From positions 5,270,001 through 5,334,000 of the forward strand of contig CDRNST010000093.1 in assembly GCA_977016875.1 (NCBI GenBank): DNA of 64,000 nucleotides, written 5' to 3'. The DNA comes from Pavona decussata (lineage: Eukaryota). Below are positions 28,472-63,028 of this stretch, in pieces (the stretch's first letter is position 1; each line of letters begins with the position of its first letter). Position numbers and translations under genes: made by a program. The notes under the pieces are model-generated. The model did not search any database. It was not told the DNA's origin and saw nothing but the letters and a program-made list of their open reading frames with translations.

Positions 28472-28859
28472 ATGTCACAGAAATGGAAGAAACTGGCCAA
28501 TATGGGAGCTCTAAGGAAACAAGACCATCAAGACGGCCATGTTGATTTGGACAACCTGAGTGAAGTCGAACCTGAGCTTTTCATCAAATTTGTGCGAATC
28601 CCAACGCTCAAAACATACACGAGTCTGATCGCAAAACTTAAAAGCTGCCCCAAAAAATGGCTGACAGAGTTTTTGGTGCTAGGGGGGTTGACAACGCTGT
28701 TCGAAGTTCTGGAAAAACTCTGCGAGCGTGGTCTGGCCAAGTTTTCCGATGCATTTCTGCAACTTGAATGTGTTCGGTGCATTAAAGCTGTGATGAGCGA
28801 TGTGACCGGTTTGGAGTTTATATCCAGAGATCCCACACTCACTACCAAACTCGTGACTG
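28472..28859 (+). CDS. INF2: INF2-like formin, variable first coding exon V1 (N-extension + first part of DID/GBD)
   Basis: ATG 28472 MSQKWKKL...EPELFIKF...WLTEFLVLGGL...LQLECVRCIKAVM...KLVT; donor G|GTGAGT, phase 1 (388 nt). Confidence 0.9.
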
Positions 28860-31800
28860 GTGAGTAAAAGTTGTTTACCTTGTCCAAAATTTATTAAGGT
28901 ATAGTACTGCTTAGTGGTGTAGTTAAAACAAATGTTTAAAATTGCATTTAATAAGGCCAACTGAAGTCTAGTTGTCAGTTTTGAACCAGTTTGGTTTGAC
29001 CATTCAAACGGAACAAAGGCACACAACGACAGTGTTCTGATGTGTTCCCAGATCTTTTTGTGGCCTTTTAAAGACGTATTTGTGTGAGCCAATACACATT
29101 GATCCACTCGGGTGGTTTACCTGATTTAGGTAAACGAATTGGTTTTACGAAAATGCAAGCTTACCTTCTTTCGCATTTTTAATGACTTATTTACCCCTTC
29201 GAAAACGAAACGAATTACTTTTTCGGTGTTACGAAATTCTGAGTTGACATTTTGTCAAAGAAAACTGAAGATTTTCTTTACGACTAAATCCGTAATTCTT
29301 GGGCGATTTAAGTCCTCGCCCCCCGAACAGATATACACCTAAGCAAACTGTTGGATACCCCTGATGTCCCTGACGGAAGCTCTTAAGCTTCAGTAAAACT
29401 TGCCAATATAGCACGTGTATTGTTCCTTTTTCAATATCTTACAAATTCAAGGGTTTCCGATATAAAAACAAATGGTATTTATATAATCTTGAGTTAATTT
29501 TAGGCGAAAAGACTTCTAAAAGGGGGGTAAGAAAGAATAGTTCCAGTCACGATCGCCAATTTTTTGACTGCCTATCTTATTGTAGAATTCGAGCCAAACT
29601 ATTTGCGTTACATTACATAATTGTTTATTATGTTAATCTTCAGAGAACTATATCTGACAGTTTATTCTAATCATTTTGAACTTGAAAATGGTATCATGAC
29701 GACTCGATTTTATCGTTGATTTTTACTTGTTTATCTATATCTTATCAGTACTGTCAATAAAATGAAACATCTTGGAATACTGTCGAAAATATAGAGAAAA
29801 ATTCAATGTTCTCTACACTTCTCCCTTACTGTAAAACAGTAGTGGAAAATCGAAAGAACTATCCTCTCTTGACTTCGTGTAGTCTGCACTGGACTCATGA
29901 AAAATTACACAGAAAAATTGATAAATAACTGTTATAAGAATCAAACAAAAACAAGGCGACCGCAATCTTAAAAAATTGTGCCGCCCAAATTCTGACAACC
30001 TGTCTCTTCAGGCAAATGTTTTGAGGCCGCAATAAGGAGGGGCTTCAGATATTTATAGGTACGAAAGGGTGTTATTTAAAATCACGAGTTTTGAAAAAAC
30101 TTACAATCTTTTCCTAGACAACTACCTGAAAGATAGCACTAGCAGACTGTATATTACGAATTCATTTTTACCTTCACACACAGACATATATAGTTCTGCA
30201 CATTCCGAGGTATGTCCCAAAAGACTGGACTTTAAGAGATCGGTTTTCCTATAGACTGAAACTGACTAATGATTTCACCATTGGTACGCCAAATTTTTGA
30301 AGTATTTCTTTATTGTTTCAATTTAAACATGGGAGGGGTGGCTTAATTGGGGGGGGGGGTATTAAAATATGTAACCTCCAAACGGGGGGCTTATTAGAGT
30401 TAACATCGTCTTCAGCATATATCATAAGATGCCATAAAAACTACAACTGAGGAGATTTTCAAACTGAACACCATTAGATTTACACTGACCGCCAATGAGA
30501 AGGCAGCAACTGGCTACATTGCATTCTACGACTTCCTCTCGACCTTTTGCCCACAATTTACCTCCACATGTTGTTTATGACATCCAGTTCACATAAGAAT
30601 TAATTTTGTTTATCAGCTAATGACAAAATGCGATTAATTAAGAGTGTTGTCCACGTCCCGTTTGATATCGCAGTGACTTAAGAAGTCTTTAGGAAGCAAC
30701 ATTGGCAATCTTGCCTAAAGTGTAAGAAAGTTATGCTTACTTTTAATATCACCACAATTTCTGTTTACCATTGACTGTTAGAGCCAATACGGTATCGTAT
30801 TCAATATATATCGTGCGATGTCATAATGGCTAGGAACTATTGAGAATTTGAGACTGAACACTCTTAGATTTAAAGTACACTAACCACCAATGAGAAATCA
30901 GCAACTAGTTTCCTTACAACTTCCTTTCCACCTTATGCGCAGAATTTACCACCACCGTGTCCGGTTGATTAGAATTTTATCTCAGTGTTTATCAACCAAT
31001 GCCAAAGTTCCATTCATTGAGAGTGTTGTGGTTTGATACGACATTCGTTAAATTAAGAGGGCTTAGAATAATATTGTCCTTGGCAGAAGTTTTTTTCGCG
31101 GATCCCATTGGCAATTCAAAAGAGCTGTTATCATTGAGAAGCTTTCCCACTTGATACTGCAACAGGACGCAATATTTTCTAATTTTTGAAATGATTTCAG
31201 TTTTGTTACAAGTAATTTTTTGTACGTACGTGGTATAAATCTGTTTAAATGTCCTGAATAGGAGAAACTTAACGGCGGTTCCTCGTACGAACGCCAGCTT
31301 TTGAGATCAAAATTCTAATCTGGCTTGAAGTCAAGCCAAATACCGTGTGTTTCTTAGAGAACCAATCTCAGTGTACTTCACTACTGAATACATGATAAAT
31401 GGTAATCCAGGATTGCCAGTTTAACTTTTTAGTCTATGGATGAAATCCTGCATAAACTGCGACAATTTGAAATTTTTGAATTTTGAAATTTTACGACTGG
31501 AATTACCCTATTTCCTTGAACAAGCGACGAGGGACTTGTCTCACACTTCGAATTCTTGTGTATTTAATACTTGACTTTGGTCAAGTTCAACAGTTCAAGT
31601 CCTTGACCACGGTAAATATGTACTATATATGGCAATTTTTTTATTGGTAAGGGTTGAGGCGTTGTTTGAGTTTCCTGGGCACATAAGGGGGTGATTATTC
31701 ACGGGTGGTAGTTGACGAGGAAATACCATTACACTGATACGCTATTTTAATAACGCTAAACTACAATCGACTACAAAAAGAGTCTACGGAAGCATTCAGG

Positions 31801-32862
31801 GGGATTCCCATGTCTCGATGTAGCTAAAGGCCTGCTACCCCGTACAATCATCAAAAAAATCAATGCCTGTTCAATAGCTAGGTTTTAGAGTAAAAAATGA
31901 CAAAATAGCACTCGAAAACCACTTAGTTTTCCTTTCATCATGTTGAGTATTTCCGTTTGATTTGTGTTCAGTATCACTGGTATGAATGACGCCGGAACTC
32001 GCATTTCTCGAACACCCAGTGAACACAAGACTCACAATTAGATCACATTTTCCTGCCATACGCGGCCGTCAGCTTCCTACATTTGATAGTCATCAGTGTA
32101 CACCAGTAAGGCTCGCAACGTGCTCAGCGTACGGCTTGCACGAGGAAGGGGATCATAGTTCATTTCACTCAATAGCCGTGGTCACACTACACAAATTTTT
32201 ACCCAGAGAAAAAGTGTAAAGTTTACTCATAATGAAACCGGGCACATCGGTACAGCCAGCATGTGGGGTTGTCTAGATCTTATAAAAATGACATTTCGGT
32301 CGCCAAGTTGAAGTTTTGGCACGCAAATTAAAAACGGAACCATGCTCGAATCATGCAAGAACCATGCTCTTGCTCGAATGTCAAAGCCAATAAAAGAGAA
32401 GTTTTCGTCTCAGTTTCCTGCTACTTCTAATGTTACCGATTTCAATGGATAATTTGCTTTCCCTAGGAATCAAGTCAAGTTTCCCGATCCCGAGGGCAAA
32501 AGTGTGTAGTGTGACCTTGGTTATGTCTTCCGGCCCTTTCGTTCCCGCCTTTCCACTGGCGCGACGCTGTTGTCCAATCAGATTTCAGATATGCCCCGTC
32601 ACAGTCGACGCGCGACCAACCGAATTCATCCTTTCGTGTCATTATTCAAAATACTTAAACCGATGACATAACTGTAAGTTGTTATTTGAATAGACCTGTT
32701 GGTCGGTAAACATTATCGTCATTGAATAATTTGGTAGACCACCGGAAACATGTGGGCGCGAGGAGGAACTCAAACCATACAAGCCTTGATCGAGTGATTT
32801 TAAACAGAAACTTGTCAAAATTTTTGCCAGAGTAGACCCCGGCTTTCCTGAGAACAGTGGAC

Positions 32863-33247
32863 ATGGCGTTCTGGAGAAGATTGTCGCTGAAAGCCGGGAT
32901 TGGCGTTCCGGACGAGAAGGACGGTGAAAATGATCTCCAGAATTTAAAAGAAGTTGAACCTGAGCTATTTATCAAGTTTTTGCGAATTCCGTCGCTTAAA
33001 ACTTATTCGAGTTTAATCACAAAACTTGAAGACTGTTCCAAAGAATGGTTGAGGGAGTTTTTGGAGCTTGGAGGGTTGACGTCGTTGTTTGAAGTTCTCC
33101 AGAAACTCGGCGAGCGAGGTCTGGCTAAATTTTCCGATGCCTTTTTGCAACTTGAATGCGTTCGATGCATTAAATCTGTAATGAACAATGTGACCGGATT
33201 GGAGTTTATGGCAAGTGATGTTTCGTTGACAAGACATCTTGCAAATG
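32863..33247 (+). CDS. INF2: INF2-like formin, variable first coding exon V2
   Basis: MAFWRRL...EPELFIKF...WLREFLELGGL...LQLECVRCIKSVMN...HLAN; donor G|GTAAGT, phase 1 (385 nt). Confidence 0.9.
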
Positions 33248-36200
33248 GTAAGTTAAGATTATTTGTGTTGTTCTTCAGTGAAGAATGAAGTGTATTCCAA
33301 AAGCAATTATGTGATTAGGTTGGGAGGCGCTGACGTATTTGAATCCATTAGCGTCTTTTGTTTGCCAATATACGATCGGTACGAGAGGGCCGTGAGTTAA
33401 CACATCAAACAAAGTAAATTGCTTTGAATAGTTAGCAGTATCTTGAAACAAAGTTCCTTAAAATCTGAAAGTTAGAGTGAGGAATTTTAATTTACATATA
33501 TTCATGTCTTGTTCATGAGGGTTGTTTTCAAAAGACTGCCAACTGTTGGTGTTTCAAGTGCGTGCGTCACGTTATTTGTGAATGACATTTGTCAATTTTC
33601 AAATGGGCTTTCGTGACTTCTCCGCTGTGAAGCATATGCATATTCATGCAAATAAAGTTTTGTAAAATTTTTACTCTTATTTTCGTCGCTGGCTAGCCCA
33701 TCGAATTTAATAACTCCTTTGAGTTCAAAGGTGCTTGAAGCTTATCAAAAGTCTTATTAGTTGATAAAAAAAAATAGATAACCAAATTAGCGAAGCGTAT
33801 CTTCGTATAATGATATGCAAAAGCTAAGTCGCTCGTACCCACATCACATAGTCAGTAGTATCAAGTTTATTTGTGTTGTCGTATTGAGTGGGCTTGAAAA
33901 GACACAAGGAAAACGGCAGCTCGATCAACGAATTACGTAAATCTGTTTGCATTTTGGATTGTCTAGATTCCTGTGGCGAAAGAGTTATCAGTATTATGAC
34001 TGAAATGAAGACAAACTTTATGATTGTTTTGTCTAGAACAGTAATACTGCAGCAAGATAAGCTCAGAAGAACAAAGGTTTTTACGACTTACAATCATAAT
34101 TCAAATACCTCTAGCGTACTTTGTTTGTGCTTAATTATTTGGCCGTGATTACGGTATACGTATAATTTTTTCTGTACCCTGTGAAAAAAACTGAGCCTGT
34201 GTATGTAATCTTCAAGTGTGACCTTCCAAATTCTTTGTGGTGCTTTAAATTGCTAAATTTCCTCTCAGATATTCGTATTTCCATCTGGGTTTCTGTGTTC
34301 CATTTTTAGGAGGTAAATCGAGGTTAATTAATACTTCGACACAATACTTATCACATAAACTCATTTGTCCATATATTAAATGGGTAAACAGTCGCATCAC
34401 CCACTCTTTGAGTTTGATGCCTGTGTGGCTCAGATCAGAAGGTTGGAGAAAAAATCCGCGTGCAAAGATCGTGATGTTTAGCCGGTTGCTTCGTCATATT
34501 TTGGTGATTTTGTCTAGTGACATATTTTGGGTGTGAAAACATAGTTGAGCGACAGATCTAGGTACCCAGGTCCCTCAGAGCTAGCCGACCATTCATTATT
34601 GATTTATTTTTATTTTTGTTTTTATTGAGTCAATTTGTTTAAAGCGAGCTGTTCAAACAGACCTGATGCCCATGCGCGCGATGAAAGAATTAGTTTATGA
34701 ATCTAGAGCATTTGTTTACGTGTTATTTTAGTATCCATTGCTTTTCTTCGCCTACGGCAAGTTCTCTTATCTTTAGCTGACCAGGCATGCAGCTGCAAAC
34801 TTAGGTTTTAAATATCTATTGCCCTCGGCAATGCTTAGGGTGGGGGTCTTTCTTTAAAAGTTCAGCCTGGCCTTATTGGGATACATTAGCATAAACAACA
34901 AAATTAGACTATAAATTGAAGGAGCTTGGCAAACTTAGTGCTCACTGAACATATCAGAGTGATTTGCTAAACAGTTTTTGTTAAATGACTTTTGAAAGTA
35001 TCTTGAAAGGTTTTACAAAGAATGGTGACTCGCCAAGCCACACAACAGCCTGCAGAGTATGCCAGAACTCGACCTCATGCGTGCAAAGACATTTCATATT
35101 TTACTAGCGTGCACCACGTGCAGTATCATCTTCGACGTTACCTGATGCACTGACGCGTGCAGATTGTACATTTCAGTATAAAACCTCACCTGAAAATCTT
35201 AGTTGTAGGGGTAGAATGATATATTTTCGTTTCAAAGTAACGTAAAAAACGCTTTTTTTTTTAAGTTCTATTCCCATAAAAATTTATCAATGTAAGACAA
35301 ACATATACTTAAATAAGAGTGGAAATTTAACATTCTGAACGGTATGTAGTAAGGGTTATTTTCCAGCAAATTTCTTCAGTAAACTAAATTTGGCGTTCAT
35401 TATGCCAGAAAGTTTTGCGTGCGCACAAAACGCGCGCGAACGATAGTCGCGCGTGTGCCTGCCGGTGCCATGCTGTGCAGACTGAGCCATACATTCTTTG
35501 TAAACTTCGCAGCTATGAAAGCTAAGTTTTTCCCGAGAGAATTGAGCATATCTCACTGATCAGTTCACCCTAATTCCCAAGTTTGACTTGATAATTTCTG
35601 TCATTTGGTTTGTGGTTTCCTTTTGTTCGTAGCGTATTGCTTCACATATGCTAATAACGAAAAATGTAAACAATGACGTCAGCAAAGATTCCCGTATAAA
35701 GTGCGGAAGTTAAACCTCTGAGGCTGGAGTCACGAAGCCATTAAAGTTAAGATGTAACCTAGATATTGTTTCTTTGTGAATCCGGTCCCTGGACTTCCTG
35801 GAAGTTCTAACCACGTATATCAGTGTTTTCAAGATGGCAATCGTCGCGCGGTTTTGAATGAAGACCAATGAAATATTTTTCATAACTAACTATTTTAGTG
35901 TGTCCAGATAAAATGTGAATGGTTTTAAATGAAAGCTACTAAAATTGCATTCAGGAATGGACAAAATACTATCTTAAACATGCCGTGCTCTGAGTTGAAA
36001 AAACTTGAATTGTTTTGGAGGCTTTTGTTTTTGCGTTTGGGCTGAACCTTGATCTCTTGGCAGGCCTCTGTATTTATAAGAGATTCAGCTGAAAAAGAGA
36101 TCATATTCAACTCCCTTCTAGAGTGCCTAGCTTAACCTTTTTTAAGTGGTGTGAATGAAGGCCTGAAGTGCAGTCATTGAAAGTATTATAAGTGTCCTGT

Positions 36201-36929
36201 GTATGCGACACATGCACTATGTTGCTCACAGAAAGCAAAATAAGAAGCTGAACATTTGGCAGCAGTAGTCAGTCCAAGTTACAAGAAATCATTCACCGTA
36301 TTTCACCTGATAATAGAAAGATTTAGAATCGAGTTTATGGGAAACGGCAAACGCGAGATTCGCGTTTATGTTTCCTTGAAAAAAGTGAATACATAGATGA
36401 GAATAATGCAAAATGATTCTGGCCTTTGATGCTGACGCAAAACTACTCAATTTTACTGAGAAGAGGCAAATGTAGGATAAACATGGTCACGTAGTCAACT
36501 CTGCCGTTTGCTGAATGTTACCGGCTTAATCCTTAGGAAATAAAGGCTAAAATTAGTTTTACAGATTATATATTTTCAAACTAGGGAAGGAAAACCTCGT
36601 TGAGGTATACCAGTTGGCTGGAAAAAAGCCGGTTTTTGACAATTATTCCACGAGTTGGCTTCTCGCATGATTCCTATTTGTAAACGTGGTGGTTTGTCAC
36701 GCAATATGCAACTATTAAAGATTTCGTGATCTATCTCGCCTCGTTTTGGGTTTGCACTGATTAGAATAATATTATCCGACAGCTGGGTTTAAAACAAGAG
36801 GACCGTAACCATTTGCAGCTGACAATTACAATTGTTTGCTATGAAAATATCGTCCTTTCGAAACTGTTGACGGACTGAAGTTGTTTGTAGTCACGAATGT
36901 AACATTTTGCTCTCCACAATTTGCTAAAA

Positions 36930-37329
36930 ATGGCAAACTCGGGCTGGAAGAGACTCCGAAAGTCGCCTATCTTTCAGCAGAATGTCCACGTGGAATCAAA
37001 CCAGGGACAATTCAGCAACATCGAACCAGAATTGTGCATTAACCTGCTGCGCATACCATCGCTGAAAAACTTCTCCTCGCTTCACCCTAAACTCGCCAAA
37101 TGCTCAACCGAATGGATGTCAGACTTTCTTTCCCTTGGAGGTCTGGATGTGCTTTTGAACGCTTTGGAGATCCTATCAGCGCGTTTGTCCGCTTCAAGTC
37201 GCCATTTTGCCTTCATGGATGCGTTTGTGGCGATCGAGTGTGTTCAGTGCGTCAAAGAGGTCCTGAACTCTCAAGGAGGAGTGCAGTATTTTCTGACCTC
37301 GCCAGATCTTGTCTGCCAATTAGTTTACG
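36930..37329 (+). CDS. INF2: INF2-like formin, variable first coding exon V3
   Basis: MANSGWKRL...EPELCINLLRIPSLKNF...WMSDFLSLGGL...IECVQCVKEVLNSQGG...QLVY; donor G|GTAAGA, phase 1 (400 nt). Confidence 0.9.
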
Positions 37330-39525
37330 GTAAGAAAATGTTTTCCTGTTGGGCAAAACTATGCTTGCTTTAAATATTCTGCTTTATTAAAACCTTGTTT
37401 GTAATAACAATTGGCGTAAAATTGCCCCGTGGTCTTTGTCCTCGAGTTTCGCACATTTCAGTATTTCACTATTTCAGTTTCTAAAGCTCCGTCACGGAAC
37501 TTGCAATAGGATCTCTTTGTTTCATTTTCGCTTATTTTTACAATGCTTTTCACCCTCTCCTCGGCTGTAAAAACTAAAGATGCAATCATAACTGGCTTTC
37601 TAAAATGTCTGCGCCAAAGACATTTGGTCTACCACCTACTACGCAGCACATTAAGATTCACATACTTCTCGAAGGTTAAATACTCACTGTACTAAATTGG
37701 AAACGTTCAGAGAAAACAAACAGGCGGGGGTATTTTACTTTGCTCGTAAAATGAGCCATTTTAGACAAAGCTATCATATCACAAAAATTAGATAATTTTA
37801 GGCAAAGCTATCATATCACAAAAATTAGATAATTTTATCCTAATTCGCTTTTTATAACAAACGAATCGCGGTTTCCGGTGACAAGTATTATATGCAGTTA
37901 AATCGACAGGATACTAATCCAAATTGGACGTTAAAGGGATTACTTGTACTGGAGTCAAGTGAGAAGACTAAACCACAATGCCGGTTCCTTACGGTGTTCT
38001 GTTTCAAGCTGATTCTTATAAGTTTTACAACGGAAGTCTTTATCTCATAAGAATACCTCTTTGGAGAAAGCGCGCGTGCTCATTATGTGACTTAGAAAAC
38101 ACACAGACTGGAAGTGATTGTCAAAATTGACAAGCACGTTAGGAAGCACCACCGCTCCATGCGTAACTCTTTCCCAGAAGTCACGACCTTTTAAGCTCCA
38201 CTTGTGTTCTATATTTGTTGCTTTAACAATGTTAGAACGCTCAGCACCTCAGTTTAGGTGATGGGGGCGAGGTGGGATGATGTTTGACAAACAGATTTTT
38301 TGTTGAAGGAGTATTGGCAAACATGTTGTTAGTCTCGTCAGTACACGTACGATGCAATCATAAGCATTATCTATGGAATGTTTACCAGCGAAAGGCAAAA
38401 AGACGCCAGGAGACGTGTGGCGTACAAGGCTGATAACTATTACAGAATACCTGAAAACTAATATCCTAATTATGCGACAAGATAATTAATCATAAAAGTA
38501 TCCGATAAGGATGTAACCAGTTTAAAGTTCACGTGAATACTAATTAATTGAGAGTAGTTTCATTGGGATCTAAGTTTTTGTGTCAAAACTGTGCTAACAG
38601 TTAAAACTTAATATCTTCGCTCGTTCGCTCCTTCGGTTTAGTCTTTTAAAATAACGAAATAAAAAATGGGTGACAGAGACCCTTTTAGAAAAACGCCCTT
38701 TTCTTTTAAGGATATGGTGTAGTAAATCAAACGAGTTATCTTTCTAAAATTATAACCGTCCCCGTTTACATACCAGGGGCACCCAAGGATATCTTAAAGT
38801 CCTTAATCGCCTCACAAACTGAAATTCGGATTTAGGTCGTAAAGAAAGTCTACAGTTTTCTTCGGCAGTGTCAGCTCAAAATTACATAACACTGGAAAAC
38901 TAATTTCTTTTGTTTTCGAAGGGGCAAATATGTCATTAAAGATGCGAGAATAGGTTAGCTGGCATTTTCGCAAAACCAACAATAAGCTCGGGAAATAAAA
39001 TTCCATTTCCTAAAACTTTCCGCACTTTAAATTTTCAGCTAAAGTATCCGAACAGATCAATCTGTATTAACTTACACAGATATGTCTTTAAAAGGCCTCA
39101 AAGCGATCTGGAAACACAGGAGACAAATTTTAAGGATTTTGCCTTAATGTTCTCGCTGGGTGCCTCATGTCAGCGATAATTCGTCTTTATTGCAAAAACG
39201 GCTAATGAATTTAGGCGTCTATAGCTTTGGTTTGGTGTTTTTGCTGTACGTTAAGCAAGTCACTTTGATTAATTATGTCAGTGCACATGTCATTCATTTC
39301 TTGCCATAATTCTGAAGAACATTAATACATGAAGTTATTGTCCCTTGGTGCTTTTACGTTTGCATATTTGCAATTTTGTGATCGCTGTTTGTCGCTAAAA
39401 AAGCGAGATTGGCCTGTAGAAAACGGCGCGCTCATTGTTACCATGGAGAATGCAATGATTGGCATTTAAATGGCCCGTGCCCTGCGGGAGCACCAAACTA
39501 CCTGTGAAATGTATTCTGTTCCAAG

Positions 39526-39901
39526 ATGTCGCGAATGGCCGTTAAAAACAAATGGTCTTCTCTGAGAAGACAACTCTCTGGCGCAGATCAAACATGTCTG
39601 CTTTCAAACGAAGCGTCTCCTGAATTTTGCGTTCGATTGTTAAAATCCCCGTCTGTCCAAAACTACCATGGCATTCGAAGCAAGTTGAAGAGTTCTTCAG
39701 ATGATTGGATGGCTGAATTTCTTGATAGAGATGGAATGGAGGTCTTGTTAGGCGCTTTGGAGAGATTAAGCTCAAGGAAATTATTTGTGGACGCGGTTAT
39801 GCTTCTTGAATGTACATGCTGTATCAAATCGGTGTTAAACTCCAAAGCTGGATTAGAATTCATGATTGGAAATCGCGACTTTACGAGAAGACTTGGTCGA
39901 G
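39526..39901 (+). CDS. INF2: INF2-like formin, variable first coding exon V4 (ATG 39526 or 39535)
   Basis: MAVKNKWSSLRRQL...PEFCVRLLKSPSVQNYHGIRSKL...WMAEFL...LECTCCIKSVLNSKAG...RLGR; donor G|GTTAGT, phase 1 (376 nt). Confidence 0.9.
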
Positions 39902-42443
39902 GTTAGTTATTTTCAATCAATTTTTGAAGCTAAGTTTTCTCGTGTCTGTGTGATTGGGAATCTGCTCGTCGCTTATAAATCGTTTGCGAATCAAAGAAAA
40001 TGCTTTTCATGAACTTTAGTTGGCTTATAAAGGTTTGGTATATTGAAACAGTATTTTAGTTTTCATTGAAAATTGCAAGCTGTGCATGTCACCTCTAAAG
40101 GACAAAAGTGCAACGTTTCGCGCCCTTTCTTCGTTCATTCTTGATTAAAACCAAGTTTTCTTTTGTTCCATTACAGGTAAAGCGTTCTAAGCTTAGTATT
40201 TTGATTAAAAATGTGCAAAGAAAATGCCAAAATTTTGCGTTGGAACTCACGAAAATGTCCATCTCTTTGCCTCAGACAGTTTTAATTAAGAGAGATACAA
40301 AAAATATAAAAATAGTAACGTTATGCGAGCCACTAGATGTAATGACCGACAGGTGTTTAACTGAAAGCATTTTTATCCTCTGTTCATAAATTATATTTTC
40401 CTGACAATATGACCACAACTTAGATAACAGTATGGCATGTACATTAGCCCAGACATTTAGACTCTTTTAAACTAAAAACACCATTTTAGTTTTATCAGAG
40501 GTGGGAAAACACAGTTGGACAGAAAATAAATAGATCACCTGTGTTTGAATAGCAGAAGATTCTAATAGATTTTACAGTCAAGCAAACTGCATGAAAAATT
40601 TATCGTTGGCAAAGATTGTGGTTATAAACCTGATTCTTAGTTTTATGACTTGGTTTGTTCCATTTTCTGGGAAGGACCCGCATTCTTTGAGGTTCCAGCT
40701 ATGATAAATGAAATTAATAAATAGAAATTATTTTACAATATTCGACTTAAGGAAAACCAAGTGTTCTCAAGCGTTCCTAAGGATTCCTTTGTCACTTTTA
40801 CTTAATGTTTGTTTTCTTTTCTCATTGTGATTTAGAATTAACGAATGTGATTTTTAAAGATCATAACTCGAGCTTAAATGATATCAAGCACTTTGTTGCG
40901 GACAATACAAGCATTTTTTTGTTGTCTAATGATGTGCTCTCTTTGCAAGAAATGAGACTTATCTAACGGTTGTGATAACATTTTAGATAGACCACCACTT
41001 GTAAATTACGCGAGTTATTGCCTATTTTAAAAGCGAGCAAAACCATGTTTTCTTGCTATTCGCTGCTAGAGACAATGGTATACTCTGTGTCCTCGGGAGG
41101 TTAATTGTAAATACGAGCTACATGTGAGAATTACTGATTTCGGATTGCAAACATTTGTTTCAGTGTCTTGTCTACAGACAAGTGCCTCATGTTGAAGGAT
41201 GGTTGCGCTCGTCTTCGAAGAGCGTGCAACATTTTGTTTCTGTAGACAATCGTCTGGTGATGTGAAAAATTTCGACATTTCCAAATCTGAAAGCTACGCA
41301 TCATACCCAGCCACTAATATATACAGCTCTTTCGACAAAGGTTGTCCAAAAAAGGCGTAAAAGCGTACGCGACAATGCCGAAAGGTAGTCTGGGAAATAC
41401 CCAATAAATTTCAATATAAGTTCAGAATCAATAAACTTCAATAAAATTCAAAATCAATAAATTTCAATAAAAGCTCAGAATCCATATTGTCCGCCATCGC
41501 TTTACCACATACGAATCGGTTCCGTCTCCTGTTGTCGCATTACACGAGAGCAAATACAAAAGATCAATGACACACTGGCTCGGGTACAATGCGTTATTGA
41601 AAACAAAGAGAATGCAAGTGATGAACAGGCACACTAGGACAGAACCAGCAAATCAGATATTCGTATTTTTCCATTCCTGGTTAGTTTGTTAATTTATAAG
41701 GCAGCCGAATAGGTTGCAAACCACTCCGTAATTTTTGTGGTTTCCGTCCTGAATTCACACAGTGTGTGCTTTCTGTTTCTTGAAAGTTCGCTCTGACCGC
41801 AAAACAGACGCCCGTGTTTTGAATCTGAGTCACCTTGGCGATGGCCTGCGTCGCAGACAGTCTATACAATCCCTGGTGTCGAGTTCTCTACAGGTCTTGA
41901 ATGACAAGACAGGCTCTCGAGTGAAAAGTCCGGCTGCAAGGCAGGCTACTTTATACGTCATTTCCGGCGGCTTATCAAGCCGAGGATTCCAAAGAGTTTG
42001 TAATTTGTTTTAAAAAACAGTGATTGTCGTTTATAGAAAACTGAGATAAAAGTAGGAAAACACAACTTTAGGCTACCAGGAGATGTTTACCTAAGCTGTC
42101 GCTTCTGGTGTTGGCGTTTCGGAAATGCCGCTGATCACTTGAGTCCGAAACAAAAAGGTGACCGAAAGATGGTGATTATAATCATTATTAACTAATTCAC
42201 AGCTTTTGAGCAAATAAGTTCCTCTCAGGGGATTTGGCTTTTATTTTACAACCGGACAAATCGCAGCTGCATCAGAGCGGTACGTTCACGACTACATTGA
42301 GGTCAAGCGAGACACTCTCAACGTTGAGTGTGTTCACCCAGAGCTTTACATCTGCAACTAAATCAGTCGCCGCGAAAAAATACGACCTAAAGAACTGGCG
42401 AAGCTGATGTTTTGAAACCAGAGTGTGGCACTTGAACTTACAA

Positions 42444-42846
42444 ATGGCCCTCAAATTCTCGAGACCAGCTAGTTCAAGATGGCGAAAGATTTCTGGAGAG
42501 AACCAAGACACACATTCTTCTGTTCTGTGCGGGCTAATAGCGGATGCAGATCCCGAATTGTGTGTCAAACTCTTGAAAACCCCGTCGATGAAACATTTTT
42601 CCGGGATTCGGCCTCGTCTGGAAAAGCCTGCTAGCGAGGAATGGCTAAGTGAATTCCTTACTCTCGGAGGACTTAACTGTTTGCTTGATGGTTTGTCGTC
42701 TTTGTCTTCTGGTAGTGGACTTACACGTTTCACCGAAGCCCTTGAACAAATCGAGTGTGTAAGGTGCATTAAAGCGGTTATGAATTCTCCAATTGGCTTA
42801 GAGCTAATGACTCGGACCAACGATTTAACTCGGTCGCTGATAAAAG
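42444..42846 (+). CDS. INF2: INF2-like formin, variable first coding exon V5
   Basis: MALKFSRPASSRWRKI...ADPELCVKLLKTPSMKHFSGIRPRLE...WLSEFLTLGGL...IECVRCIKAVMNSPIG...SLIK; donor G|GTAAGA, phase 1 (403 nt). Confidence 0.9.
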
Positions 42847-44072
42847 GTAAGAGAGAATAAATTTTTACCGCCATAAATAAATAGCGTTTGCCGGCATTAG
42901 AGGTTTGCGAACACCTTCCGTCTTCGAAATATTTCAATTTTTATACAAACGTTTTCAGTCCTAATTTCTGCAACGATAACGCGTACCGTTATCGAAATTA
43001 GAATTTTTTTCTTCTAAAGAAATACAGTTACGAATGGCTGTCAAAATTTTTATCTTTGAAAAGCGAGTTGGATCGAATTAATGAGTCAATATAAATTCAC
43101 CTATTGAATCTAGCGCTAGCCTTTATTTGACGTGGTGTGTAAAGAGTCCAGTGAACGAATATTGTTTGTTTGGGATTTACATGTAAAAGGAGGGGGAAAT
43201 TTGCATATGAAAGTTGGTTCTATTTTGCTTTCTACTATAACGACAATATGGCGTTTTTCCAGTTCATTTTCGACTTTATTATGACTGCAGTCAACCGGTT
43301 ACTCACACAATGAAATATTATTGTTGAATCAGTCAACTAAAATCTTTAAATTTTCTCGGAGTACACGTTTGTTACTACTGAGCGTCGATGATCTTTGCTT
43401 CTCTCCTGCCAGGCATGAGGCATTGTTTATGTATTTTATTTGGCTTTTATTTGGGTGTTTGAGCGCGGGAAAAATGTTACGGGGATAGTGAACTATTAAC
43501 AGATACTCAAGCGACGAAAATTACGGGGCAGACGTCACGTGACCTGTTTCGAAGAGCGCGTTTGATGCAGTAAGTGACGTTTCTGTCTTTGATTGGTATA
43601 TCTTAATTTCTGTATTTCCGCTGACGGGTAGGAAGACAAATGGACCTCCAAATCTCCTTCGCTTCTGTTTTCAATCTTCACAAGTACTCGGGTAGGCATT
43701 CGTATTTGCTTGCATGCATTCCACCCATGTGCGTTGCAAACCATGTGATTGTCTTTCGCGTTGCGGTGTTGGCGTGGTGGACAAGAACTTGAATCGACCT
43801 CTCAGATTTTGCGTCCAAATTACGGACACAAAATGCTTTTCAGGAAGACCTTGGCTCCTAAGGTAACTTTGAACAAGGTCGCTACCAAGGTTGGCTTTCA
43901 TCAAATTATGCAACGTTAGCCCCGATCTCATTGGTTGCGTCACCATCAACATTTCAGAAAATACTTTCTGCGTTCGCGGCCACTCATTTTACGCTAGCAG
44001 AATAGAGCCGCATGAGCGTTGGTTTAATACGCTACTACTTCATATATTGTTGCTTTACATTTACTAACTTTT

Positions 44073-44462
44073 AGGATGGTGCCTATCTTTGTGAGTGCGC
44101 ATGCGTTCTGCGCATCTTAGTCCGTTTACGATGTTCCGAGAATCTCGGGGTTATTTTTAAGCACAGTAGAAAGATATTTTTGCGCGGCTTATCAACATGA
44201 GGAAGAAAGCAGATCGAAAGAAGATGCTATTAGAATAAAAAAAAAATGGGGGAAACCACTCATTTATCAGACAACAAGGCGTCAATCAGGACGAAATGCC
44301 ATTACTGTAGAGCATTTTAAAGCTTTTTAGATCTGTTTTTTTTTTTTATGAAAAATGCGAGGTTACCTCCAATTTTCTTTTTGGGTTCTAGTAGTCTTTG
44401 CACAGATCTACTTTTTGCGCATAACGATTAACCACTGAAAAATGCCTTAGCAGGCACCGTCC
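44073..44462. mobile_element. Older copy of the GGACGGTGCC-terminus MITE family
   Basis: GGATGGTGCCTA ... AGGCACCGTCC; interior collinear with 48382-48762; partial third copy at ~59070-59192. Confidence 0.6.
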
Positions 44463-45269
44463 TACGATATGAAAATATAAATGCAGTTATTTTACGTAAG
44501 TCGCAAAAAGAAAAATAGAAAAAACGTCAAACTGATCGGCATCAATATTTGATGTTTGGTAGTATTTTTTTGCTACGTGACCGCTGTTTCCTAGGATAAC
44601 TATCACTGGCGTAGAAATGCAATAATTATCTTTTTGGTCCAAATCATTCAAATTTCAAAAAAAAATATAAAACAAACACTCGTAAGTACTTGCTGCATCA
44701 GAGAGATATTTACAATACATGTCGGTCACAGCTAATTTTGCTTTAAACTGATTGTGAAAATACATGTGTTTTCGGAACTTCCCCAAACGGGCACCTCTCT
44801 TGTTAAAGTAGACATTCAGTCATGTTCCCAGCCTCACACAAACTCTAACAGAGTCTTAACTTGCCAAAAAATGGATACCTCTTAAGCGGCAAGTTGTTTA
44901 AAGTATCAAGGTGTAGATTTACGCGAGGATCAGCCATATTGTAAGCTGTATATACAGATAACCGACCAGAATCTAACTAAATTGTATATTGGGTAGATCT
45001 ATATTCACCTTGATGAATGAATTTTTAATTCTTAAAAGCCATTGTCTGGTCTGAATAAAAAAAATTAGCTTTAGAGTGTTTTGAATGCAATTTGGATGAA
45101 ACAGAACCACAGGAAAGCGCTGCTCAGTAGCTTTCGTTTGAATGATCAAACGAACTCAAAGTTAGGATTCAAAACATGGCACGAAAGACGGAATATGCGG
45201 CGAGTGAAACCGTTGATTTGTTAGAGTAGGATGTTTTCCCATGCAGAACTAGCTTAAAATATATAATGT

Positions 45270-45483
45270 TTTGGGAAAGGATTGATATAGAAATAAATAC
45301 CAAAAAGTGTCAAAAATGGCTTTGAAAGAAACACAGACGTTTCGGGTATATAACCCTTCTCCAGTGTGGAGAAAACCGTTGAATTACGCTACCGGACACA
45401 CGCGCGCATATGAATAGTAACGCGCGCATGCATTAAATTCAATTCAATTATAGCTAAAAATTGAACTTTCCTTTCACCTTTAA
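45270..45483 (-). mobile_element. Short retroposed insert with 16-bp target duplication and hammerhead-like motif (Penelope-like)
   Basis: TTAAAATATATAATGT at 45254-45269 and 45484-45499; minus strand CTGGAGA-AGGGTTATATACCC-GAAAC. Confidence 0.55.
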
Positions 45484-46364
45484 TTAAAATATATAATGTC
45501 TAACATTCAAGACTTGTTACAACAGTGGACTCTGCGCGCTATCTCGCTATCTTTTGCATTCGAATTCCCGCTTTCTTGACCAAAAATTTGTTTTTCTTGT
45601 GCGTTCGTGACAGCAGGAGTCTGCGTTATATAAGCAATGATATTCAATTTCCAGATTCAAGGTACTGTTTGAATGCACCTGCGCTTAAATGAAGAACAAT
45701 TTCAAGTAATGATCACCTAATGGTTGGACTCCAGCTCAATTCAAATTGCACACTTATCTACAAACATGAAAAACCTCACGAACGTTAAATAGATATATTT
45801 TTTGGTTCAGCAAAGCAAAATTTTAATCCAATACCTCATACTTGTTTAAGGATTATATAAATTTATTTACGTCTTGGTGTATTCAACGAGCCTTGTCAAC
45901 AAAACAAACAGTGGAAAATGGTAGCTCATTTGCTATTCCAATTTTAATTACAACTTAGGCCTCTTACTGTAGAAATACTGCCTTAATGAATAACAAAACA
46001 TTAAATAGTATGACATTTGCAAATCAATGTTTCTATTCACAAAAAATCTGCCCTAGTTGCTCCTTTAATATCACTACGGATCTACAGTTCAGTTCGGTTT
46101 ACGTTTTTGTCTCGATTTAATTTCTTGATCGAGAATCTAACGTCCCAAGATTTAATCCTTCACGCGCACGAATTTTAAAAAAGGAAATCATGCTTTATAT
46201 CTCCAGTGGGCAGCGATTTGCATAGGGGAACGTTTAATAACGAGATAAGCCTAAACAGTTTCAGCTTATAATAACTTTTTCGCTGACCGCAAATGGTTTT
46301 CTGATTTATTTTTGTTTAATGGAAGCAAGGTAGTTTCTCTTCCTTGTTGCCTAAATTCGTCATT

Positions 46365-46761
46365 ATGGCTAATTTAAAATGTGCAAAAAGATGGAACGTT
46401 GTGAGGCAACAGTTTAACTGTTCGCGGGATGAAAAGCAAGTTGAGAACATCAACATTTCCAGCGATGTCTCTGCCGAACTGTGCGTCCGTTTGCTCAGCA
46501 CTTCGTTCCAGCAGAATTTTTCCGGACTCAAAACAAAACTTCAAACGAGCTCTGGTCAATGGATTTCAGAATTTCTTATTCAAGGTGGAATGGAAGCTCT
46601 CTTTCAAGCTCTAGAAAGGTTAAGCCGAGGCGGGAGAATGGCGTTTGTGGATGCGTTTATGCAACTGGAGTGCGTGAATTGTATCAAAGCGGTTATGAAC
46701 TCTAAACAGGGGCTGGACTCCATGATACAGAACAAGTCTTTGGTTCGTAGTCTGGCTAAAG
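46365..46761 (+). CDS. INF2: INF2-like formin, variable first coding exon V6
   Basis: MANLKCAKRWNVVRQQF...AELCVRLL...NFSGLKTKL...WISEFLIQGGM...MQLECVNCIKAVMNSKQG...SLAK; donor G|GTTGGC (weaker), phase 1 (397 nt). Confidence 0.88.
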
Positions 46762-48381
46762 GTTGGCGTTGTTGTATTTTCTTTAATCCATTTGTTTTGT
46801 TAACGACATGTTTTCAGCTTTTGCCTTTGGCGAATTAAGTTTTGAAGTGCTAAGTGAGTGCTATATGTTTCAGTTTTTACAAATGGATAGTTCAAAACTA
46901 AAACATATTTTCAGAGGTACTTTTAAAAGCTTGGCCGATAGATCAAGGAAAAATATTTTTCCTCGAAATTTAATAATCTGTAACTACGAAACGTAAAAAA
47001 ACTGTCACCGATTCGAGTTTGTGTCGGCGGTGAAAATTCTCTTCATTACTTTCTGTCCTGTCAAATTAATCATGCGTTATGAGTTCTGGGTGGGCGTCAT
47101 TTTGGTTTCACTTGGAAACTCACCGGGAGTCTCATTATAACACTACTAGTTTACAGTGATATCACTTAATATGTAAAATGTCTCTTCGCTCATTAATTAC
47201 TTTCACGACTTAAAAGATATTGACTTGTTTTGGCATCTAAACATGTCTTAGTGTTAAAAATGTCGTATGTCAAGTAAGGTAATCCACAAACAGTGCCCGG
47301 TTTGCTTTGTTCGGCAAGTGCCAAATTTGTTCTCATGTCGTGAAGAAAATGAGAAGCGTTCACATCCTAAGATAATTGGAATTCATTTTTGTAAGAGTGT
47401 GTCTTTCCGGTAGTATTAATAAAACAAAAAAGCGCTCGAGGCGAAAAGGAAGTCCGAAATTATATGAAGAAAAACGTGTTGTTAATCTTCCACGCGGGTA
47501 AACTTTGTCTTGGGTTGTATACAAACTGTTTGCAAATAGTTTTGTGACTTGATTAATATCATCGTCTGATCTTGACATATATACACGGGTAAAAGTGTTT
47601 ACTTGGCACTTAAATTGCAACTTTTTCATTATCGCTTTTCTCTTTTCTTCTGAAATGGAATATTTTAATTACCACAATAGCGTGGCAGTGATGTAATATC
47701 GTGAATTATAAGAAACTGGGTCATTGTACAATGCAGCTCCAGCGATTTGATTGGCTTAGCGGCCACGGTATATGAGCCATTATACCATGCCCGAGAAATG
47801 GCGACAATTAAATTGTGCGATAGCGATATTTCTTTACTGTTTTTAATAAAACAATTATTCCAGTAACGCTTGTTGGATTTGAGATGATTATAGCCTCGTT
47901 GGTTATCTATCATCTCTGTCATATCCAAGGCGCGCTCGTGGAATAATTGTCAATTTTATTTACCTTGGCCTGACAAATTCATACGAACCAGTCAGGCTCT
48001 TCTTATCATCACTACCTGATAATTTTCACTTATAAAATTGATGCAAAGTTACGGATACAGTTCAGGCAGACACACGGAGAAGCTTAGATTCAGTGTTAAG
48101 TGGCAAATTTCCAAAAGATTGACAATGCAAGAATTTTTTTGTCGAAAATGTGTCTTATGAAAACTGACTACCTCCTGGAATACCAACGAAGCGCGCTTTT
48201 GATTCAGGGTTGGGTTACTTCAGGGCGCAGGAAAGATTGTTTCTTTCATTTTATGGATTCTAGAGTGTATTACTTTTAGATTTGTTATTTTCACGCATTA
48301 TGGGAGGGTTTTACTCGCTTTTTCGTCATAACAAAAGCGTAGGGTAATTTATGTACACTATGCTTACAGATCAAGACTTAA

Positions 48382-48762
48382 GGACGGTGCCTACTTTTGT
48401 TACTGCGCATACGTTCTGCGCATCTCGAGATACTTGCGTTTCCTATGGGTGGCGCCTACTAATACAGGGATATTTTTGTGCGGTTTAAAACTATGCGGAG
48501 AAAGCAGAACCTAGCAAGTGCTCTTGGTATAAAAAAATGGGGGTTCAGAGATAAAAAAAAAAAAGCTTCAATTTTGAACAAAACGCCATACATTTCTTTG
48601 TATTTTACTGTTTTTCAGAATAATCGTTGCTTAATTATCTCTAAAAAATGCGAGGTTACCCCCAAATTTCGTTTTTGGATTTCAGTAGCCCTTGCTAAGA
48701 TCTGCTTTCTCCGCATAGTCATAAACCAAACAAAAATACTTCTTTATTAGTAGGCACCGTCC
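48382..48762. mobile_element. MITE with TTAA duplication (Kolobok-like)
   Basis: TTAA|GGACGGTGCCTAC ... GTAGGCACCGTCC|TTAA. Confidence 0.8.
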
Positions 48763-49352
48763 TTAAAGTTATGGCTTGTATTAATATTGACAACATAAAT
48801 AGAAACTTTGTATTTTTCCATGATTTTATGTTCTTTCATCTCTAATTGCGACGATTTTACTCGCGAAATTTTTACCAGACGATTTTGCACTATTCTCTAA
48901 GCCAAACCCCGCCAAAACTAAAGGCATTTTAATAAGTTAGAACATTTGTCCTGTGTAAGAAAAAATTCACACGACAATTTTGTTCAGTTTTGTTGTACTG
49001 GCTGTCAAGGTAACTTTACCGAGAAGAATTCCTGGATTTTTTTTTTTTCGCGTGAGCGGCACTGCGGGACCATGCAGTTCGGCCACAAACCAACTAGTTC
49101 CCAAACTCTTCCTTTCAGCTCACCTGTAATATTTCTTTGCCCGGCCCAGGCTGGTCAGAAACGATCAGGAGAACTATCTAACCGGTACTGTTAACCCACT
49201 GGCCGGTCAAGACAGCGTAAACAATGAATAATTTACCAGAATTCCATTCCCTGCAGTTTATTTGTAAACCATGTTATTTCTCTCACCAGCTAATAGTTTG
49301 AGTTAAATGGTACATGCAATGCTGATATTCGTTTCTTCTCGTTCAATTTCAG

Positions 49353-52300
49353 CTCTGGACACGAACAACACCATGATTAAGAAACAAGTTTTTGAACTTC
49401 TCTCCGCGCTGTGTCTTTATTCCACTCAAGGACATCAACTGGCTATAGATGCACTCGAGAATTACAAGGTATTTTGTGTGAAAATATGATTACCTGATAG
49501 CTTAGTGACTGGCACAGAAGCCATGATGGTTTAAAGGTTAACGCGTTGGACGTTTGATTGTAAAATCAGCGGCTTAACTCCTGAGTGCTTTCCATTAAAC
49601 CAAACTTTTTAGAAATTTTGATTTAAACAAAATGGATCAGGCCGGGGAGACAGACAGAAGCCTAACAAACTTGTTGCTTTTTGAATAAAATGAAACTACA
49701 ACAGTCAAGGCCACCGGCGCGTAACATGAAGGTCCCATCTTAGGGAAACCTACTCAACCCGTTTTGTTAATAATGTTTCAGATTTATTTATAAACGGTTT
49801 TTTAAGATAAGATTGATTTATCTTCTCACTAATCCCCATATATTCTTTACGATGCAAGTTGGGAGGATTTGTTTCAACACAAAACATTTTTTATCCTTTA
49901 GCAATCATTTCACCTATTCTCATGACCGTACATGAAGTGACAATGTTCGTGCATTAAGTGATGATGTAAGATGAAGTTAGATTCTGATCACTTTATACGT
50001 TGCATGTTACGTCATGGCGCCCATGTTGGTGGTTAGGAACAATGCAAAATATGTACGCAAATTTTCTTTTGTTTTGGCACCAACATGGCGGCAATACAGT
50101 CAACCTATTGGTTCCGACCGAAGCGTTAAAGGGAGAAACATGAACATACAGGCATACAAGACCCCAGAAAGACTTAACTAATTTAGATGTTGTGATATTG
50201 TGATATTTGCTTTAATTTAATCCGACATTTTTCTTTTTTTATTTCATTTGAACGCCAGCTCACCAAAGGACAAAGGTACAGATTTAGTCTGATCATCAAT
50301 GAACTCAAAAATGCTGAAGTGGTTCCATATATGACCACTTGCCTGGCTTTTATAAACACCATACTGATCGCCACCGAAGATTTTGACGAGCGGGTTAGAC
50401 TGCGAAACGAGTTTGCAGGTGAGAACAGAAACATTTGGTACCTAACTATTGCACAGCCGATTTTACAGTTGTGTGCTTAGTGACCTGGTCTTTGACTGGA
50501 AGCGAGGCTGGGCTAACCTTGTTGTGATACAAACCTCACTGCTTTTCATATGTACATCATGCTGTTCTTATGCTAACTGCTATGAAAAATAGTGAGGTTT
50601 GTATCAAAACAAAGTCGTCCCCAGCCTCGCTTCCAGTCAAAGAGCAGGTTACTAAGCACACAGCTGTAAAATGGGCTATATTGAATTTATTTTTGAACCT
50701 CGAGGCTTACCAGGATCAGCAATTTTCGTCTTTGTCATAAGACTGAAAAGAAGGCATGTTTGAAAACGTGAATGGATCCAAACCTCTATACTCTGCCTAG
50801 TATTTCTTTTTCTTATTCCAAATTGTAACGTTTTAACTAAACATAAACTCGAATGAAGACGTATATGCACGTGTACATTTTATACATCGAGACCTGGAGA
50901 GGTTACAGTGGCCTTGACCAAAAGATAAAAGCCAAATCTTCATGAACAAAGACATTGTGAAGGAAAGCTGAAAATTACAACTGGCCTCAAAAAGGTTTGT
51001 CAAACAGCGCTACAAGAAAGAAGCTAAAACTGTTAATTTGTGCGTTATTTAACTGTCGTCGAGTTAGACCACCTATTTTCAATTTTGCAGGTATTTTCCA
51101 TGCATTGTCGCTTATCGCAGCTCCGTATTGTCTAAATAATTGGTCACAACTTAGTTCCTTGCCGTTCAATGGTTGTGTGTTACTGCCTGCAGCGAGAAAA
51201 TTGTCGCGTAAGGTGCTTGTGGTTTAAATATTTATTGCAATTGGTCAGCATAGAGAACGTTTATTTACATTTAGAATTCGTCCCCGTGAATTCTGCTCCG
51301 TGCGAAATAGCAGGTGTATGGATCGATCTAAAAAACACGTCGATCTTTTTCATAACAACACTTTAGAATCGCAGGAGATTTCTAGTAGTTCTGAATATGA
51401 AAGCCTGCTTTTCTTCGACAAACATTTTGAAGCTTTCTCAGATTATTGTGGGGTTGTAATTGTCATCAAATAATTCGAGAAAAGAACATTTTTTTGAGGC
51501 GAAATTATCGTGGCGTAGAAAGTATGTCAGCATGGAACCCTGTTTTGCTGCAAATTAATGGCTCCGATATATTCCACTTCAGGTTTGGAATTGCTGGATA
51601 TTCTGAGTAATTTGAGGTGAGAAATAATTTAACAGTTAAAATTAAGAAAATAGACTATGATATGTAAACTATTTAGAGCTTCTACTGTATTTCGTTTCCT
51701 TTTTTCTATGCGCACTAAAGCTACACGACTGGTGATAACAAAATAAGTCCAATATTACATGCGTGGTGAAGTTTTACTCGCGAGCTTTCTTGTAGTAGCT
51801 ACACAATACAATGACGGTGTTTTGGATATCAACATCGCAGACGCGTACGGTCGATCAGAGAAAACAAACTACACCGCTAATGTGTGACGCTTTTTGAACT
51901 GAATACACTAATAACATTAGTTTCACGAAGCTTGGGAATCGTTAAAACTACTTACCTAGATGGCGAAATTTTATAACAAGAAAGAAGTGAGCGTTTTTCT
52001 TTGCGGGTTCACAGAAACCCTTCAGTCCGAGCTAAAGTCTCAACGTTAAAATGAATCCGAAATGTCGAGCAGAAAGTTCTGCGTTCTTAATTCCATTCAG
52101 GACACTTTCTAAAATATTACAGTGTAAAAAGACATCCTGCGTCTCCGAGGATGGAATAATGACGAAACGCTTTTAAAAAATGGTTTAACAATTTATGTCC
52201 AAGACCTTGGTGACTCGAAATGGAACTCAGGAAGATTTTAAAAGAAGTGCTTTTATGTTCGGGACATTGTTGCTATTTTTCCCACTCTCTTTCAGTAGAC

Positions 52301-62926: not shown

Positions 62927-63028
62927 GTTGGCATCCTCATTAAAGTTTACCCTCAACTAAAAAGACCAAAAGGTTAATTATGTTTGTGACAATTGATTAA
63001 TCTTTTATTTATTTGTTTTTATTTTTAG

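Follow-up and report, generated by a model that had tools for sequence, protein, structure and literature searches.

A probable array of six alternative first coding exons in an INF2-type formin gene of the coral Pavona decussata

Introduction

Can a single formin gene supply one actin-building core with several different regulatory ends? The formin INF2 underlies the rapid actin burst that calcium triggers, and human disease mutations cluster in its N-terminal DID. The question is raised by a 64,000-nucleotide (nt) stretch of the Pavona decussata genome (GCA_977016875.1, CDRNST010000093.1:5,270,001-5,334,000, forward strand), in which six diverged versions of an INF2 N-terminus, here called cassettes V1 to V6, lie in tandem ahead of one set of constant exons. 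This whole stretch is referred to as the window, and coordinates are window positions unless another sequence is named. We consider it likely that the locus holds a single INF2-type formin gene, with six tandem paralogues of its first coding exon that provide alternative N-termini. One gene would thereby probably make several formins with a common actin-building core and a different regulatory N-terminus on each.

In human INF2, residues W11, L14, and L18 of the N-terminal extension constitute the only calmodulin-binding site and are required for activation by Ca2+ (PMC9616786). The N-terminus has a further role in autoinhibition (PMC12632326), and work on how it tunes that control continues (PMC9616786, PMC12632326).

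Results

Six homologous cassettes precede one constant region

An earlier note on this DNA, made from the letters alone, had described six homologous open reading frames (ORFs), each with its own ATG and ending in a common phase-1 donor. All six were found where that note had placed them: they are intact, diverged paralogues on the + strand, each with its own start codon (Table 1). The G/GT of each donor (28859, 33247, 37329, 39901, 42846, and 46761; the slash marks the exon end) falls at one aligned codon position and in phase 1 in every case. In a full-length alignment of the cassettes, 20 columns are invariant and identity to V1 is 32-67%; each cassette matches Pfam Drf_GBD above the curated cutoff (E values of 5e-17 to 4e-9), the region matched being model positions ∼30 to 165. 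The array is far beyond chance, because paralogue E values among the cassettes are ≤1e-18 and collinear orthologues exist in other genomes (see below). V6 is the cassette nearest the constant region. A tblastn search located no seventh cassette in the 64-kilobase (kb) window, and a search of the whole 602-Mb genome with Drf_GBD returned only the six cassettes and one unrelated formin, with no second INF2 gene. The nearest database relatives of the proteins encoded in the window come from stony corals.

The same note had proposed a single next exon at 49353, no FH1 or FH2 exons between the cassettes, and an INF2-type product, and each of these statements stood up to the searches. The acceptor TTTCAG/CT is real and its exon is single-copy; any cassette joined to it through the G+CT junction yields Ala-Leu-Asp-Thr. 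No extra copy of exons 2-6 was detected in the window at the protein level up to E=100 or at the nucleotide level, and tblastn and domain searches located no FH1 or FH2 exon between cassettes. The full-length relatives retrieved with a cassette profile are INF2 proteins of amphioxus, hemichordates, echinoderms, and vertebrates; their first ∼120-140 residues match every cassette, and their downstream residues match one copy per constant exon. When the N-terminus of an orthologous Montipora isoform was used as a query against solved structures, the best match in the PDB was human INF2 (9azp, E value of 7e-89), far above mDia1 (1.7e-27). With an N-terminal DID that lacks a full Rho-binding GBD, and with FH1, FH2, and WH2/DAD also present in the window, the gene is, on this sequence evidence, a clear INF2 orthologue and an INF2-type formin.

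The cassettes correspond to human INF2 residues 1 to ∼130, that is, to the N-terminal extension and the first ∼100 residues of the DID. In an alignment to human INF2 residues 9-327, a cassette covers only ∼40% of the DID fold. Each cassette would thus be a true N-terminus, consisting of a short extension (a calmodulin-binding helix in human INF2) and part of the DID. A transcript starting at one cassette would splice the donor of that cassette to the acceptor of exon 2, and any cassettes farther downstream would be removed with the first intron, as in UGT1A and the clustered protocadherins. The remainder of the DID, FH1, FH2, and WH2/DAD would be common to the predicted products, which would differ only in the regulatory N-terminus.

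Annotated isoforms join cassettes to the constant region

The predicted joint can be compared with isoforms already annotated in other species. RefSeq lists "inverted formin-2-like" as six isoforms in Montipora foliosa (X1-X6) and three in M. capricornis (X1-X3). The Montipora N-termini are of three kinds, orthologous to V6 (X1 and X5), V3 (X2 and X4), and V2 (X3 and X6) at 74-80% identity, and all three kinds run straight into the residues of exon 2 at the predicted joint. For the genomic layout of the exons behind these isoforms, we used a Montipora-like ENA contig (L006), on which the V2-, V3-, and V6-type exons map to one array. Taken together, the contig and the isoforms show that V6 splicing there uses the odd GTTGG donor. 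In addition, the Oculina RefSeq model XP_078369378 joins a V3-type exon to exon 2, and an old Nematostella gene model, P0412, joins cassette 5 of that species to exon 2. The variable-plus-constant layout proposed in the earlier note is thus borne out by the Montipora isoforms of the V2, V3, and V6 types and by the Nematostella model.

The arrangement is captured in databases only in part, as three isoform classes in Montipora. Elsewhere the cassettes figure as separate "proteins" of 110-150 residues or as chimeras, and gene callers list them as separate genes, much as the earlier note had expected of automated annotation. In the JGI v1 annotation of Nematostella (DS469701.1), four cassettes out of five are entered as predicted proteins in their own right, 127-147 residues long. 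Single cassettes are likewise treated as proteins in the annotations of Desmophyllum and Oculina, and in Pocillopora meandrina pieces of three cassettes are combined in one chimeric protein, P0001.

The array is older than the anemone-coral split and evolves by gain and loss

On Nematostella scaffold DS469701.1, a tandem row of five cassettes, spaced 2-4 kb apart, precedes a single exon 2 and a single exon 3. Each of the five cassettes has an ATG and, at the homologous position, a G/GT, and cassette 3 shares the unusual GTTAGT donor with coral V4. In a maximum-likelihood tree, the Nematostella cassettes Nv1, Nv2, Nv3, and Nv5 group with V1/V2, V3, V4, and V6, respectively (ultrafast bootstrap values of 94-96); V5 forms its own clade, Nv4 sits unplaced on a long branch, and the V4 and V6 classes are closest to bilaterian INF2. 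The order of cassettes along the chromosome is identical in Nematostella and coral. Because the Nematostella cassettes are collinear with those of corals and four of them pair with coral classes, the array predates the anemone-coral split, and at least four cassettes, probably five, stood in their present order in the common ancestor of anemones and stony corals. The duplication that separates V1 from V2 is later than that split. In the octocoral Dendronephthya gigantea, there is a single first exon and no further cassette within 10 kb upstream. The cassettes reported in the earlier note recur as arrays in Nematostella (five) and in other corals, and not in the octocoral; among the taxa sampled, the array is a hexacoral feature.

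The coding sequences of V1-V5 are under purifying selection. In comparison with another coral (L002), the ratio of nonsynonymous to synonymous substitution rates (dN/dS) was 0.11 for V1, 0.15 for V2, 0.06 for V3, 0.15 for V4, and 0.07 for V5, at a dS of ∼0.8-2.2, where synonymous sites are near saturation. The flanks of the same cassettes are largely unalignable: downstream, only a 91-nt match after V2 was found, and upstream there are short blocks, the strongest of which lies before V4. Conservation stops exactly at the G/GT, and the read-through tails beyond it vary between species.

Cassettes have also been lost and duplicated within corals. Orthologues of V1 are present in other corals, and V5 was found in L002, in a second coral contig (L009; ENA ERZ25067872), and in Oculina. 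On the Montipora-like contig (spans 960-1367 and 14352-18560), several in-frame stops make the V1 orthologue a pseudo-exon, no V5 lies between V4 and V6, and V4 is intact, with no RefSeq isoform using it. Between positions 423 and 18676, contig L009 carries three V1-like cassettes, a short V2-like remnant, two V3 copies, V4, and V5; one of the V3 copies is without its donor end, and the duplicated V1-V3 unit is a lineage-specific segmental duplication inside the array. On this evidence, the array evolves by birth and death. That all six cassettes are intact in P. decussata speaks for their use, because cassettes that are not kept elsewhere visibly decay, and we infer that all six are used in this species.

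Cassette classes differ in the calmodulin-binding motif

The N-terminal extension was surveyed for its motif in 116 cassettes from many coral assemblies, a complete W-x2-Φ-x3-Φ being decided by a hydrophobic residue at position 8. The Trp is invariant in the six cassettes of the window and in all 116 surveyed. Position 8 is hydrophobic in every V4 (7/7) and every V6 (28/28) cassette, against 0/41 for V1, 1/20 for V2, 2/14 for V3, and 0/6 for V5, and the Nematostella orthologues show the same split between classes in the 1-4-8 motif. More broadly, the first 35 residues show strong conservation within the V3, V4, and V6 classes and differ between classes, and the helices around GGLxxL and ECVxCIK are invariant.

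These patterns suggest a constant core fold and a constant DAD-binding half of the DID, the regulatory helix and the outer armadillo repeats being the parts that cassettes would swap. The classes may accordingly differ in Ca2+/calmodulin control, with V4 and V6 being candidates for calmodulin-switchable N-termini and the others perhaps responding to different inputs. A side observation concerns the start of V4, which has an extra upstream ATG (MSRMA..., 39526-39537); the orthologues of two other corals begin at the second ATG (MAR...), and the true V4 start may be at 39535.

Cassette choice and alternative explanations

One candidate promoter within the array is a block of ∼80 nt upstream of V4. 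This block contains a TATA-like sequence ∼60 nt before the ATG and is conserved in three coral genera, between which the surrounding DNA is mostly unalignable; it fits a promoter belonging to V4 itself. Sequence upstream of V1, V2, V5, and V6 is weakly conserved, and none is conserved before V3.

Several observations weigh against one gene with six usable, separately started first exons. The donors of V4 and V6 are nonconsensus (GTT...). The cassettes have no promoter element in common and no common TATA position, and CCAAT/ATTGG is not enriched upstream of them (0.65 versus 0.55 per 250 nt). No annotated isoform in any species uses a V1-, V4-, or V5-type exon correctly, and an Oculina GenBank model that begins at V5 reaches the constant part via implausible exons. 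In the protein collection, a 400-residue query recovered no spliced coral fragments of 220-700 residues, and a cassette-length query returned only ORF-type calls reading into the intron. Contigs from four coral metatranscriptome runs that mapped to 36880-42879 fell on dispersed repeats only, save for a trace of depth 1.25 over V5 in a single run, with none on V3 or V4; these runs are small and may derive from another coral, so the result is neither support nor refutation.

A first alternative keeps the exon array but has a single upstream promoter and a noncoding leader exon serve all cassettes, the choice being made by mutually exclusive splicing; we regard it as unlikely. Since each cassette encodes a true initiator Met, any shared upstream exon could only be noncoding, and the alignment of each of these Met residues with residue 1 of other INF2 proteins counts against a shared leader. 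The lack of a common promoter element is easier to reconcile with such a leader, as is a pyrimidine-rich stretch followed by AG ∼35 nt upstream of the V6 ATG. Set against these are the TATA-like block before V4 in three genera, the weaker upstream conservation of V1, V2, V5, and V6, and the established rule that known arrays of this layout, the clustered protocadherins and UGT1A, have one promoter per variable exon. On balance, separate promoters are rather likely to be the means of cassette choice. A different doubt is whether only some cassettes (e.g., V2, V3, and V6) are functional, V1, V4, and V5 being silent relics of duplication. RefSeq isoforms exist for three classes only, V4 and V5 are without RNA coverage in the metatranscriptome runs (beyond the V5 trace mentioned above), and the arrays of some corals do lose cassettes. 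In the window, however, V1, V4, and V5 have kept both ATG and donor, with dN/dS values of 0.07-0.15 amid mostly unalignable flanks; V4 shares its donor with a Nematostella orthologue; and a truly dead cassette elsewhere carries several stops. We consider the relic explanation quite improbable.

The cassettes might instead be independent small genes for DID-fragment proteins of ∼130 residues, perhaps acting as decoy regulators, as their listing by gene callers as separate proteins and the closing of every ORF 1-26 codons past the donor would allow. Such a product would comprise less than half of the DID fold, and it would have to explain why conservation ends at G/GT with tails that differ between species, why donor phase and position are invariant over all classes and species, and why RefSeq isoforms join cassettes to exon 2; we hold this explanation to be very improbable. 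Least credible, to the point of being nearly negligible, is an assembly artefact in which collapsed or duplicated haplotigs give false tandem copies. It has only its general possibility to recommend it, the lone N gap of the window being outside the array, and it is opposed by the divergence of the cassettes, which are only 32-67% identical, and by the same ordered array in independent assemblies of other corals and of Nematostella. One INF2-type gene with six alternative first coding exons remains the reading we prefer.

One apparent exon signal was rejected in the course of this work. The four metatranscriptome runs contained 15% of the words of 39501-49500, a share that could have been read as three exons plus exon 2; it came from repeats at 38.7-39.2 kb and 41.3-41.9 kb. 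These belong to a dispersed repeat of ∼115 nt (e.g., 41318-41435) that has >1,000 first-look candidates in the genome. It often occurs as inverted pairs ∼40 nt apart, resembling a miniature inverted-repeat transposable element, and is abundant in coral metatranscriptome contigs.

Other features of the window and its surroundings

The remaining exons of the gene are collected in Table 1. When Oculina and Montipora proteins were used as tblastn queries, matches in the window reached approximately residue 1500 of 1600-1800. The N gap (161 bases, 56036-56196) directly follows the FH2 exon that ends at ∼56035, and the next exon is at 56675. This gap apparently hides no coding sequence, because Montipora residues 927 and 928 flank it. 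Outside the array, a second Drf-type formin with GBD, FH3, and FH2 matches lies at contig positions 5132969-5148502, ∼121-137 kb upstream of V1; it has only 28-38% identity to INF2, and the motif GNYMNAGSRN in its FH2 suggests a different subtype.

Table 1. Features of the INF2-type locus in the window. Cassettes are listed as probable alternative first coding exons, and each ends with the G of its donor.
Feature	Position	Strand	ORF	Splice site	Remarks
V1	28472..28859	+	28472-28858	donor G/GTGAGT	Probable alternative first coding exon; Drf_GBD E 5.5e-13
V2	32863..33247	+	32863-33246	donor G/GTAAGT	Probable alternative first coding exon; 67% identity to V1
V3	36930..37329	+	36930-37328	donor G/GTAAGA	Probable alternative first coding exon
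Conserved noncoding block upstream of V4	39430..39510	+			TTTAAA and ATTGG; candidate core promoter (putative function)
V4	39526..39901	+	39526-39900	donor G/GTTAGT	Probable alternative first coding exon; complete W-x2-L-x3-L motif
V5	42444..42846	+	42444-42845	donor G/GTAAGA	Probable alternative first coding exon
V6	46365..46761	+	46365-46760	donor G/GTTGGC (nonconsensus)	Probable alternative first coding exon; complete W-x2-V-x3-F
Exon 2	49353..49468	+		acceptor TTTCAG/CT	Single copy; 79% identity to amphioxus and sea-star INF2
Exon 3 (DID/FH3)	50259..50418	+			Drf_FH3 match at 50247-50417
Exon 4	51583..51616	+			Encodes 12 residues; placed by splice sites and phase; matches Montipora residues
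Exon 5	52431..52569	+			End of DID, dimerization region; 96% identity to Montipora
Exon 6	53247..54662	+			Linker, FH1 (about ten PPPPPLPG repeats), and start of FH2; 472-codon open exon; Drf_FH1 E 9.4e-16
FH2 exons	55107..59971	+			About ten short exons; Pfam FH2 match at 57537-57830; tblastn with INF2 proteins
WH2/DAD-like motif	59864..59905	+			14 residues, identical in Montipora-cluster transcripts; called on sequence pattern
C-terminal tail exon	63028..64000	+			Gene continues past the window end

Discussion

Judged by its layout, the coral INF2 array is a probable variable-first-exon cluster of the type represented by UGT1A and the clustered protocadherins. The likeness to UGT1A is extensive: in both, tandem paralogous first exons have their own start codon and a donor without an acceptor, encode the N-terminal, specificity-giving part of the product, and are followed by one common set of downstream exons, and in both, copy number varies and pseudo-exons lie within the array. 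UGT1A is an enzyme whose first exon encodes the whole substrate-binding domain, whereas the INF2 cassette supplies a regulatory helix and part of an armadillo-repeat domain; moreover, a promoter for each exon is demonstrated in UGT1A and is proposed here for coral INF2. The alpha and gamma protocadherin clusters likewise combine variable first exons with constant exons and contain both orthologous and lineage-specific exons, the result of birth and death. However, the protocadherin variable exons, at ∼2.4 kb, encode a whole ectodomain and transmembrane segment, and their choice is stochastic, acting through a conserved promoter element, CTCF, and cohesin; no such shared element was found in coral INF2. 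UGT1A is the closer analogue, because there, too, the N-terminal part of one polypeptide comes from the variable exon. Looping of the protocadherin kind is unlikely in corals, because non-bilaterians are without CTCF (PMC10719294).

Within the INF2 family, the deuterostome genes have an orthologous constant region and the same exon boundary before ALDT, and they keep the W-x2-L-x3-L motif that is retained in the V4 and V6 classes. They differ in having one N-terminus in every isoform set inspected, diversity being achieved through whole-gene paralogues or downstream splicing. We considered the deuterostome isoforms as a precedent for alternative N-termini and rejected them on the ground of that shared N-terminus. 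The known mammalian INF2 isoforms differ at the C-terminus (CAAX and non-CAAX). The octocoral counterpart (Dendronephthya gigantea XP_028397616) is this same gene; its first exon ends at the same boundary (G/GTAAAT) and is a single one, unlike the hexacoral array.

The earlier note had known of no description of such an arrangement for a formin. As regards the literature this holds, since we found no paper on variable first exons in any formin, and a survey of animal formins that includes Nematostella is silent on them; as regards databases it does not, since RefSeq lists three alternative N-termini as Montipora isoforms. If the reading given here is correct, no actin nucleator would have been described with a variable-exon cluster before.

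The evidence also leaves room for a broader scenario, which we put forward tentatively and would rate at slightly below an even chance. Hexacorals may have kept five or six alternative INF2 first exons since before the anemone-coral split, with two calmodulin-switchable isoforms (V4 and V6) and three or four isoforms that have other inputs, the choice among them being made by promoter according to cell type or stage and without CTCF. If so, the cluster would offer a tractable non-bilaterian model of isoform diversity through promoter choice, given that Nematostella is genetically manipulable. A variable-first-exon cluster on an intracellular regulator in animals without CTCF would also bear on how promoters can be chosen without the vertebrate looping machinery. 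For annotation, the array explains a set of spurious "Drf_GBD-only" fragment genes and chimeric models in cnidarian genomes.

For the INF2 family, the locus would amount to a natural experiment: six long-conserved N-termini on an identical catalytic core, only two of which have the known calmodulin motif. Comparing the cassettes could reveal the N-terminal determinants of calmodulin sensitivity, strength of autoinhibition, and choice of partner.

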